From Podarcis cretensis (Eukaryota), in NCBI GenBank assembly GCA_951804945.1, contig OX638157.1:29016001-29080000 (forward strand): a stretch of DNA of 64,000 nucleotides. The letters are read 5' to 3'. The notes under the pieces were generated by a model. The model was given only the letters and a program-made list of their open reading frames with translations. It was not told where the DNA came from and ran no database searches. The stretch's first letter is position 1. Every line of letters starts with the position of its first letter. Positions 2,609-61,857 of this stretch are shown here, one piece after another. Position numbers and translations under genes: made by a program.

Positions 2609-2644
2609 TATCTGAAGAAGTGTGCATGCACACGAAAGCTCATA
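2609..2644 (+). ncRNA. Minimal type-I hammerhead ribozyme motif (METTL14 sense strand)
   Basis: UAU-CUGAAGA-A-GUGUGCAUGCACAC-GAAA-GC-UC^AUA; predicted cleavage after 2641; stem I only 3 bp. Confidence 0.7.
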
Positions 2645-2699
2645 CCAAGAACTGACTTAGTTGGTTTTTAAGGTGCTACTGGAAGGATTTTTTTTGTTT
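2611..2699 (+). mobile_element. Penelope-like element terminal fragment (copy 1)
   Basis: Same sequence as the other three copies; 11-bp TSD taaaaataata at 2600-2610 and 2700-2710. Confidence 0.8.
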
Positions 2700-2997
2700 T
2701 AAAAATAATAAGTAACTGTGTAAAACACAGAACCGATCGGCACCTTGTTGATTGAATCCACAGCCTTAACACTAGGAGGACAGGGGTTAATCAAAGAGGA
2801 GCAAATCTGAGGACCCACATAGTTCACCTTATTAGGCAGTCAGCCAAAATTTCAGTTTCTTTCAGAGGGATGTTATACTTAACTGTGGACATACGGGAAA
2901 ATCCCCCATCCCTTCTGCGAACTCCAGAGAATATTTCTGTTGGGAAACATGCTTGGGAGAGATGCAGATTCATACAGAAGATCCCCAACCTCTATAC

Positions 2998-25829: not shown

Positions 25830-25956
25830 ACACGAAAGCTCCATGCACACGAAAGCTCATACCAATAACCAACTTAGTTGGTCTCCAAGGTGCTACTGGA
25901 AGGAATTTGTTTGTTTGTTTCGACTACGGCAGACCAACATGGCTACCTACCTGTAA
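25830..25956 (+). mobile_element. Penelope-like element terminal fragment (copy 2) with the 3' half of the hammerhead
   Basis: catgcacacgaaagctcatacc...ggtgctactggaagg...ggcagaccaacatggctacctacctgtaa. Confidence 0.8.
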
Positions 25957-26619
25957 TTATGTTTAAAACTGTAGTAAGAACCAAACCTATAACCAATACT
26001 GAGTCAGACCACTGATCCATCAAACTTTACTGGGCTCCCCAATGTGGTTCTCATAGGTACCACAATACCCCACAACACCTACCAAGGCCTCTTTTTAAAG
26101 ACTGAATATTTCTCACTTTTTTATAGGGTGGTTTGGTGTGGGGACTGCTTGTTTTTGGAGGCAGGGTTGTAGTAGGAACTTTGCCTGGTGTTTGGCATGT
26201 GGTTTCTTAGATGTCCAAATGTGCCACCAAGTTTGTAATACACACTGCGTGGCAGTGGCTATTGAGGGTTTGAGACAAGAGTCATTCCCAGTCCTAGTGG
26301 GTGTTATCAAGGACTGAACCTGGAGCCGTTCCCAAAACCTTTCGGCCACTGAGCTACAGCCCTTCCAGATTGACTCCTGTGTGAAGAAAAGCTAAATTCT
26401 GTGATATGTGCCACCTCACTTCCTTTCCTCTCCTACTGCTGTAATTTGAACACTGATTCTTTCTATGTTGTGGACTCTAGACTAGCACCGCAGTGGACAC
26501 AATATAACCTCAGCCACTTGGGGAACCTTCCAACAAATCATAAAACCACAGTGAAACATTTAGAAATTCCCTTTACAGGGCTGCCTTCAGATGACTTCTA
26601 AAAATTGTGTAGTTTTTAT

Positions 26620-59805: not shown

Positions 59806-59975
59806 CTGAAGAGAAAAAGAAGTGTTACCAAAAAAACACCAAACAGCTGACAATGTAATATCCACTCCACAAACAACTCCTAGAATTCAAAGTCTAAACA
59901 ACATGCTTTGTAAACCTATGGAAGAAAACCCAGGCAAGCCTCAGGATCACAGGATACTCCTCCTTTCCCTCTACT

Positions 59976-60233
59976 CAAAACAAAATAAAAAAATTCCTTC
60001 CAGTAGCACCTTAAAGACCAACTAAGTTAGTTCTTGGTATGAGCTTTCGTGTGCATGCACACTTCTTCAGATACACAGATGCACACGAAAGCTCATACCA
60101 AGAACTAACTTAGTTGGTCTTTAAGGTGCTACTGGAAGGAATTTTTTTATTTAATTTTTTTATTTTTTATTTTTTATTTTTTATTATTTTGTTTTGACTA
60201 TGGCAGACCAACATAGCTACCTATCTGTAACTG
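59976..60233. mobile_element. Penelope-like element insertion with inverted terminal fragment (copy 3)
   Basis: Left arm 59976-60078 inverted relative to 60079-60233; 10-bp TSD tccctctact. Confidence 0.85.
60037..60074 (-). ncRNA. Minimal type-I hammerhead ribozyme motif (SEC24D sense strand), intact
   Basis: GUAU-CUGAAGA-A-GUGUGCAUGCACAC-GAAA-GC-UC^AUAC; stem I GUAU/AUAC. Confidence 0.75.
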
Positions 60234-60912
60234 TCCCTCTACTGTACTTCTCCAGAGCAGCCACAAGGAGTTCAGAAATGTTTACTTCACTCCTTCACTA
60301 TCCAGTTTTGTGTTTTCCAGACCAGACAAAATGCATAATTAATTATGGTATATTTTCATTTGTAATTATTATTATTATTAAATCACCTTACACACACACA
60401 CACATTTGAATTTGTTCAGAGATAGAAAACAACACCAACTCAAAAATGATTAACATGCAGACAAACCTAAGCACTAGGGCTTGCATTAATAACCTGTGGT
60501 TTTGATAAAATGTAGCATTACTAATTCTTGCCCGGCACATTCAGATGCTAGGGTAGAAGAAACAAAGAGAACTGAAATAGGACTAAACCTCATCTTATGG
60601 CTCATGGACCTTCTGCTTTGATCTTTTAAAATCAGGCATGGAGGTCAAAGGCTATTCTCTGCCCATAGAATACACTCCATATTGTAACTGCACTAAACAT
60701 ATGGATCAAATTAGGCTCTGGACTTTAATCTAAACAACTGCTTGATCCAGGAAGAAAGAGTCGGGCTTTTCCCCTTGATTAATCTGATTTATACAGACGT
60801 TTCTTAATAAGCATTCCAGTGAACAGCACTTAAAAGTAGTGCTTTATTTGTTTGAAAGGAAGCACTAAGTTCTATCCATAGAGTATGCCACCTACACAAA
60901 TGTTTAAGGAAT

Positions 60913-61166
60913 GAAGAAGAAGAAGAAGAAGAGTTTGGATTTGATAGCCCGCCTTTCACTCCCTTTAAGGAGTCTCAAAGCGGCTAACATTCTCCTTTCC
61001 CTTCCTCCCCCACAACAAACACTCTGTGAGGTAAGTGGGGCTGAGAGACTTCAAAGAAGTGTGACTAGCCCAAGGTCACCCAGCAGCTGCATGTGGAGGA
61101 GCGGAGACTCGAACCCGGTTCCCCAGATTACAAGACTACCGCTCTTAACCACTACACCACACTGGC
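60913..61166 (-). mobile_element. tRNA-derived SINE (Squam3-like) with (CTT)n tail
   Basis: Minus-strand head gccagtgtggtgtagtggttaagagcggtagtc, box B ggttcgagtc. Confidence 0.8.
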
Positions 61167-61464
61167 ACTGAAAGGACTCTACAGGATGTGCAGTAATGAA
61201 GTTAGGATTTGAGTGCAAAGGACTGTGGCTTCATCAACAGCACAAACCAAACTGGCAATAGACCTTAGTGCTCCAGGAATGGGATGCTTTTGCTACACAC
61301 ACACATATCTGGGAGTAAATCTAATGGAACTCAGTGGCACTTCTGAGTAGAAATGTACAATAGTTATTATTTATAATTTATTTTCTCCGAGGAGCTCAAG
61401 GAGACATACATAGTTCTTTCCCACCCCCCATCATCTCATTTAATCCCCACAACAACCCTGTGAG

Positions 61465-61694
61465 TCAGTCGAAACAAAATAAAAAAATTCCTTCCAGTAG
61501 CACCTTAGAGACCAACTAAGTTTGTTATTGGTATGAACTTTCATGTGCATGCACACTTCTTCAGATACTATGCATGCACACGAAAGCTCATACCAATAAC
61601 AAACTTAGTTGGTCTCTAAGGTGCTACTGGAAGGAATTTTTTTATTTTGTTTCGACTATGGCAGACCAACACGGCTACCTACCTGTAACTAGAA
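61465..61694. mobile_element. Penelope-like element insertion with inverted terminal fragment (copy 4)
   Basis: ~87-bp inverted arms 61467-61555 / 61571-61657 plus 3' tail; 8-bp TSD cctgtgag. Confidence 0.85.
61531..61568 (-). ncRNA. Minimal hammerhead motif with two substitutions (SEC24D sense strand)
   Basis: GUAU-CUGAAGA-A-GUGUGCAUGCACAU-GAAA-GU-UC^AUAC. Confidence 0.62.
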
Positions 61695-61857
61695 CCTGTG
61701 AGGTAGGTTAGGCTGAAAGGCAGTGACTGGCCCAGGGTCACCCAGTGAGCTTCATGGCTGAGTGTGGATTTGAACCCTGGTACCCCAGGTTCAAATCCAC
61801 ACTCAGCCATGAAGCTCACTAGGTGACCCTGGGCCAGTCACTGCCTTTCAGCCTAAC

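Follow-up and report, generated by a model that had tools for sequence, protein, structure and literature searches.

Four insertions in the window, by which we mean the whole stretch of 64,000 nucleotides analysed here, are best explained as members of a single family in lacertid lizards whose very short units stem from a Penelope-like element (PLE), an explanation that we consider probable. The insertions hold six arms between them; pattern searches, together with blastn of the unit against the window, found no further copy. That four insertions lie near these positions and are homologous to one another had been noticed in an earlier reading of the letters alone (the sequence-only reading). 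Pattern searches and alignment bear this out, and with refined bounds the features are as follows, where TSD denotes a target-site duplication and the arms are of a long (L) or a short (S) type.

2610–2700, plus strand: insertion c1, a single arm of L type, from (T)ATCTGAAG to TTTTGTTTT, without a tail
2601–2609 and 2701–2709: TSD of c1, 9 bp, AAAAATAAT
2610–2645, plus strand: hammerhead motif of c1, core and stem II intact, predicted cut after 2641
25830–25958, plus strand: insertion c2, a single arm
25830–25841, plus strand: 12-nt 5′ fragment of c2, ACACGAAAGCTC, stopping precisely at the predicted cleavage position C17
25842–25958, plus strand: unit of c2, S type, beginning in loop II (CATGCACAC), without CUGAAGA, with a tail ...CCTGTAAT
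59976–60233: insertion c3, two inverted arms, head to head
59966–59975 and 60234–60243: TSD of c3, TCCCTCTAC(T)
59976–60074, minus strand: left arm of c3 (c3L), L type, with the entire hammerhead and without a tail
60037–60074, minus strand: hammerhead motif of c3, exact and unmutated, predicted cut after the C at 60041
60075–60078: filler of c3, 4 nt, ACAG
60079–60233, plus strand: right arm of c3 (c3R), S type, beginning ATGCACAC, with its tail at 60200–60231
61465–61692: insertion c4, two inverted arms, head to head, flanked by the TSD AACC(C)TGTGAG, the entire insertion being nested in a SINE
61467–61568, minus strand: left arm of c4 (c4L), L type, without a tail
61531–61568, minus strand: hammerhead motif of c4, substituted at two bases (C11.1 to U; palindrome AGCU to AGUU)
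61571–61692, plus strand: right arm of c4 (c4R), S type, beginning in loop II
about 61658–61689, plus strand: tail of c4R, 32 nt, ATGGCAGACC...CCTGTAAC

What marks did these units leave on entering the DNA? The TSDs around c1, c3 and c4 measure 9–11 bp; c2 lies in an A/T-rich stretch with no clear TSD. The target of c4 is confirmed by a SINE paralogue at 60925–61165, which is free of the insertion and holds the target sequence once. The arms of c3 measure 80 nt and those of c4 87 nt, at 98% complementarity, and they are separated by 22 and 17 nt, respectively. PLE insertions are known by strong 5′ truncation, an adjoining inverted 5′-truncated copy and a tail of 30–40 bp at one end (Craig 2021, PMC8557442). 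Such marks are present here: the TSDs, an inverted 5′-truncated copy alongside (c3 and c4) and a 32-nt tail at one end only (c2, c3R and c4R).

The repeat that hosts c4 is tRNA-headed and SINE-like (61380–61464 and 61693–61800), and a second copy of it lies 300 bp upstream. A short (GAA)n microsatellite at 60915–60934 abuts the end of the SINE copy. Another microsatellite, (TTTTTTA)n, has expanded at 60140–60195, in the T-rich tract of c3R only; since the expansion is confined to that arm, it arose after insertion.

The ends of the units are informative. At the 3′ side two kinds exist, a tail-less end ...TTTGTTT(CGACT) in c1, c3L and c4L, and a tailed end, 32 nt further on at ...CCTGTAAC, in c2, c3R and c4R. 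The tail itself comprises 32 nt, is 66% A+C and occurs at one end only. Its start lies 84 nt past the ATG of loop II and its end 116 nt past it; from the predicted cut onward the distances are 68 and 100 nt. The two ends of an arm pair strictly, in six arms out of six: those without a tail reach GTATC, and those with a tail stop in loop II (at CATG, ATG or GCATG). Wherever the 5′ half of the motif is held, the 5′ end falls at (G)TATC to within 1–2 nt (8/8 copies), these eight being c1, c3L, c4L and five copies from outside the window (P0001–P0004 and P0006). The sequence upstream of (G)TATC is unrelated in each of the eight. The outside copies were found as chance open reading frames, by way of the frame that runs open through the unit from the loop-II ATG; the peptide upstream of it, VSEEVC, encoded by GTATCTGAAGAAGTGTGC, was left out of the query that recovered them.

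A fixed 5′ end of this kind points to a discrete short template, some 135 nt long, or to a very strong stop, rather than to random truncation. Because the 5′ end is common and the sequence beyond it is unrelated from copy to copy, a discrete short template fits better than random truncation of a long element. Might the insertions be, instead, randomly 5′-truncated copies of a long autonomous PLE encoding a reverse transcriptase (RT) and a GIY-YIG nuclease, in which case there would be no dedicated short template and the common 5′ end would reflect a strong RT stop past the folded hammerhead? Heavy 5′ truncation is typical of PLE insertions (PMC8557442). Moreover, in Poseidon_Ac, a PLE of the Penelope/Poseidon clade from Anolis carolinensis (Frangieh et al. 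2024, PMC11167929), most of the genomic and RNA-seq signal is concentrated at the pLTR/ORF junction of the autonomous element. On the other hand, all eight copies with the 5′ half of the hammerhead stop within 1–2 nt of one another and none runs upstream, and the open frame of the unit finds no long protein among 1.84 billion representatives. We regard truncation of a long element as unlikely.

Is there any coding sequence to which the units might be tied? A Pfam scan of the 17 open reading frames of at least 130 aa in the window was empty, with no RT or GIY-YIG domain. One frame does stay open over the full length of the unit, GTATC through tail, for about 45 codons (61564–61690, plus strand, and also in c3L and c4L); such a frame is expected by chance about 1 time in 9. 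The tail within it begins ATG GCA GAC. Among the 1.84 billion representatives, this 45-aa frame matched five short chance open reading frames only; one word search with it brought up nothing, and another yielded a sixth matching protein. The six are chance open reading frames of 106–200 aa without RT or GIY-YIG, two of them being gene models of Podarcis muralis and four lying on short ENA contigs. The family is thus present in Podarcis muralis (Lacertidae), and another lacertid, Darevskia, has annotated Penelope-class repeats; the window itself probably comes from a lacertid or a near relative of that group. Neither metagenome contigs nor viral contigs held a match to exact or degenerate DNA patterns, and a literature text search for the sequence string gave none. 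The sequence-only reading had described a non-autonomous family of about 90–260 bp. The fixed 5′ end in 8/8 copies lends that description partial support. No parent, coding or not, was seen; the term ‘non-autonomous’ is plausible.

Some of the outside copies deserve comment in their own right. In P0001 and P0002, which lie on ENA contigs of 566 and 535 bp, the 5′ end of the unit abuts the extreme 5′ end of a copy of the SINE that hosts c4; unit and SINE run in opposite orientations, and the junctions differ. This may reflect priming on SINE RNA for one target strand and on the PLE unit for the other; alternatively, the two may represent one old locus in two species. In the Podarcis muralis gene models P0005 (UniRef A0A670HY04, an Ig-like domain protein) and P0006 (A0A670IYN0, GINS2), a peptide encoded by the repeat stands at the C- or N-terminus, either by exonisation or as an artefact of annotation.

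In the sense strand of the element the putative ribozyme reads GUAU / CUGAAGA / A / GUGUG-CAUG-CACAC / GAAA / GC / UC^ / AUAC. This is the layout that had been written down from the letters, and it is exact in the minus strand of c3. Stem III is cut down, as had also been proposed, to the palindrome A-GC-U, so that only an intermolecular helix III is possible, and the double hammerhead can be paired. The statement that all four insertions share the motif was too broad. Three arms, c1, c3L and c4L, carry it, and c2, c3R and c4R, which begin inside loop II, lack the CUGAAGA half. In c1 the 5′ G is missing and stem I has 3 bp only. The core is exact in c1 and c3L, and c4L keeps CUGANGA...GAAA...UH despite its C11.1 to U change.

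Minimal hammerheads are known from the repeats (pLTRs) of metazoan PLEs, reptiles included (Cervera & De la Pena 2014, PMC4209133; see also Lunse et al. 2017, as represented in the review PMC6765202). Their traits are an extra nucleotide separating positions 9 and 10.1, a G10.1–C11.1 pair, a palindrome at 15.2–16.2 and a helix I of 4–5 bp, and they occur mostly alone or in close pairs on opposite strands (PMC4209133). The lizard motif agrees with them in its palindromic helix III, an extra A after A9, the G10.1–C11.1 pair and palindromic 15.2–16.2, with a stem I of 4 bp and a stem II of 5 bp, and its copies are likewise solitary or in opposite-strand pairs. It differs in the length of stem II, which is 7–8 bp in the minimal hammerhead families of Schistosoma. 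In addition, the minimal hammerheads of PLEs sit in the pLTR of a full element, whereas the lizard family is known from its short units alone.

The closest parallel is with Poseidon_Ac, whose hammerhead, read from the consensus, is CCU / CUGAGGA / U / stem II / GAAA / CG / UC^ / AGG (PMC11167929). In both, a short stem I is followed by CUGANGA, one bulged nucleotide, stem II, GAAA, a 2-nt palindrome and UC^. Both also have two alternative 3′ ends set apart by an A+C-rich tail of some 32–34 nt, about 85–119 nt past the motif; reverse transcription of Poseidon_Ac begins at two sites inside an AC-rich region, and a tail of about 34 nt (nt 85–119 of the ORF) lies between them (PMC11167929). The region of the lizard unit that holds the open frame corresponds to where the ORF begins in Poseidon_Ac. 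There the likeness ends. Compared by eye with the consensus, the two have no sequence similarity, and the palindrome is GC here and CG there. From cut to tail the distance is 68 nt in the lizard family and about 55 nt in Poseidon_Ac. Unlike in Poseidon_Ac, no 2.5-kb RT/GIY-YIG ORF was found attached to the units, and their 5′ end is fixed 4 nt before the core.

How readily would such a motif arise by chance? From the published description of minimal hammerheads we built a descriptor comprising a 4-bp stem I, CUGANGA and 0–1 extra nucleotide, then a stem II of 4–8 bp closed by G10.1–C11.1, followed by GAAA, a palindrome of 0, 2 or 4 nt and UH. Its sole match in the window is c3, and 300 dinucleotide-preserving shuffles gave 0 matches. 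The copies of the motif share one ancestor and are therefore not independent occurrences. No hammerhead match was returned by Rfam, either at the gathering score over the whole window or at E up to 10 in two sub-regions, so that the check which the sequence-only reading had put forward came out negative. A possible reason is that Rfam's hammerhead models depend on a hairpin at stem III, which the minimal type is missing. Cofolding gave −11.1 kcal/mol for the double hammerhead versus −30.6 kcal/mol for a dimer held through the palindromic stem II; the double hammerhead is thus not the predicted optimum. As PLE hammerheads are reported to need helpers, we count this neither for nor against a ribozyme. 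By folding, the 87-bp foldback hairpin (−163 kcal/mol) would bury the motif.

We conclude that the motif is well supported, by its anatomy and by the insertion marks around it, as a minimal hammerhead of the PLE type with a palindromic stem III and a predicted cut site. The sequence-only reading is upheld in this: the traits fit those described in PMC4209133, the layout is that of Poseidon_Ac and the insertions bear the marks of PLEs.

Could the motif nonetheless be a relic or a chance likeness, with no catalytic function in the lizard family? Minimal PLE hammerheads cleave poorly in vitro (PMC4209133). The ribozyme of Poseidon_Ac cleaves only with the protein of the element present, and C3G/G8C mutations affect this cleavage; cleavage is unnecessary for insertion in vitro, and no RNA-seq ends were found at the cut site (PMC11167929). 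Within the window, no excess conservation of the core is seen among the dead copies, which include three whole motifs. Both of the c4 arm-specific changes fall in the hammerhead. The differences between subfamilies all fall outside it, a placement that has a chance probability of about 0.16. Against loss of function stand the absence of the descriptor from all 300 shuffles, a layout shared with a tested PLE ribozyme at a similar distance from the tail, and the 12-nt fragment of c2, which terminates at C17. On balance a motif devoid of catalysis seems improbable to us.

If the RNA is cut, do the insertions record it? In the six arms of the window none starts at ATACC, the end expected from cleavage; no copy is made from a cleaved template. 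The 12-nt fragment of c2 does end at C17, a coincidence with a chance of roughly 1 in 17 to 1 in 100, and a single case recognised post hoc. The junction in c2 (25830–25858) could result from a template jump to the 3′ end of a cleaved RNA, or from a 17-bp duplication without microhomology. A speculative reading, to which we give only a small chance, is that such junctions are a genomic record of RNA ends in vivo. In c2, RT at the loop-II end of its template would have jumped to the 3′ end of a ribozyme-cleaved RNA, and the strict pairing of arm types would mean that priming of the two target strands used separate start sites on a single short RNA. If true, the c2 piece would provide the first trace within cells of cleavage by a PLE hammerhead, something that RNA-seq in Anolis failed to show.

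The sequence-only reading had further called the family retrozyme-like. The non-LTR retrozymes of vertebrates are reported to derive from PLEs, with a reptile consensus averaging 176 bp (PMC7229834; Li et al. 2026, 10.64898/2026.07.22.740005). Retrozymes consist of direct tandem repeats, and those of Cervera & De la Pena 2020 bear classical type I hammerheads and yield circular RNAs (PMC7229834). The lizard units resemble them in being short, non-coding, hammerhead-bearing and supposedly reliant on PLE machinery, and differ from them in having no tandem units in the window and a motif of the minimal type. A strict retrozyme model, of the sort put forward for non-LTR retrozymes, has transcripts of tandem units severed into monomers by paired hammerheads, after which the monomers are circularised and copied back. 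The size and origin of the reptile retrozymes would suit such a model, and a palindromic AGCU would need two motifs near each other. However, direct tandem units are absent from the window, and the arms of a foldback lie on opposite strands, only one of which holds a whole motif. The 12-nt piece of c2 excepted, no arm ends or begins at the cut site, and the 3′ ends are those of two PLE RT start sites, not of cleavage. The description as retrozyme-like is therefore unsupported for these insertions, and we hold the strict model to be very unlikely.

How, then, did the foldbacks c3 and c4 arise? Within the 78 nt that they share, c3 and c4 differ at three sites, and at each of these the two arms of a foldback agree. 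Changes confined to one arm are limited to two in c4L and the onset of the T-rich expansion in c3R. Since the variants recur in both arms, each foldback was assembled, as it inserted, from a single type of RNA. The single insertion c1 bears the variants of c3, and c2 is closer to c4; there are thus two source subfamilies, each of which has yielded single and double insertions. The notion that c3 and c4 are foldback DNA transposons (MITEs) or hairpin RNA genes (miRNA-like precursors) draws on their arms of 80–87 bp, 98% complementary and flanked by TSDs, on a fold z-score of −24 and on sub-threshold Rfam matches to several miRNA families, but it is scarcely credible and is ruled out by the mirrored subfamily variants, by the asymmetry of a tail at one end only and by the arms c1 and c2 that inserted alone, c1 with its own TSD, while the Rfam matches lie far under the gathering scores and would fit any long hairpin.

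The anatomy of the insertions, their TSDs, both kinds of 3′ end, the fixed 5′ end and the formation of foldbacks at insertion can be read directly in the DNA. The enzyme, the priming of two strands and any cleavage we infer, as follows, for a family of very short PLE-derived units. Each unit would be a ‘hammerhead-to-tail’ module, which in the Poseidon_Ac of Anolis lies across the pLTR/ORF junction. The target would be nicked by a PLE reverse transcriptase/GIY-YIG nuclease, and cDNA synthesis would begin at either of two positions inside the RNA, giving the tail-less end ...TTTGTTT(CGACT) or, 32–34 nt further, the tailed end ...CCTGTAAC. In L units copying would run as far as GUAUCUGAAG, the fixed 5′ end, where stem I of the hammerhead has its first base; in S units it would proceed only into loop II. 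Where both target strands were primed, one from each RT start site, the L and S cDNAs would be joined head to head with 1–4 nt of filler, producing the foldbacks c3 and c4 of some 230–260 bp. Such priming would resemble that of the Poseidon_Ac protein, which nicks and extends both target strands in vitro (PMC11167929). Helix III of the hammerhead could form only between two RNA molecules. Once inserted, the copies decay neutrally.

Minimal PLE hammerheads, one-sided tails and inverted double insertions have all been published already, squamates included, and the lizard family matters little alone. It is useful, instead, as annotation. Some copies appear as coding sequence in gene models of Podarcis. 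The foldbacks (59996–60163 and 61495–61629) draw Rfam E-values down to 7e-12, to RUF6-5 and several miRNA families, all below gathering, and insertions of this form could seed false miRNA or sRNA calls. A reading of the unit as carrying Pol III A and B boxes was rejected by eye, the matches being poor and the T runs internal. Beyond annotation, the family is a possible natural data set on the use of two RT start sites in vivo, on the priming of both target strands and on templates cut by a ribozyme.
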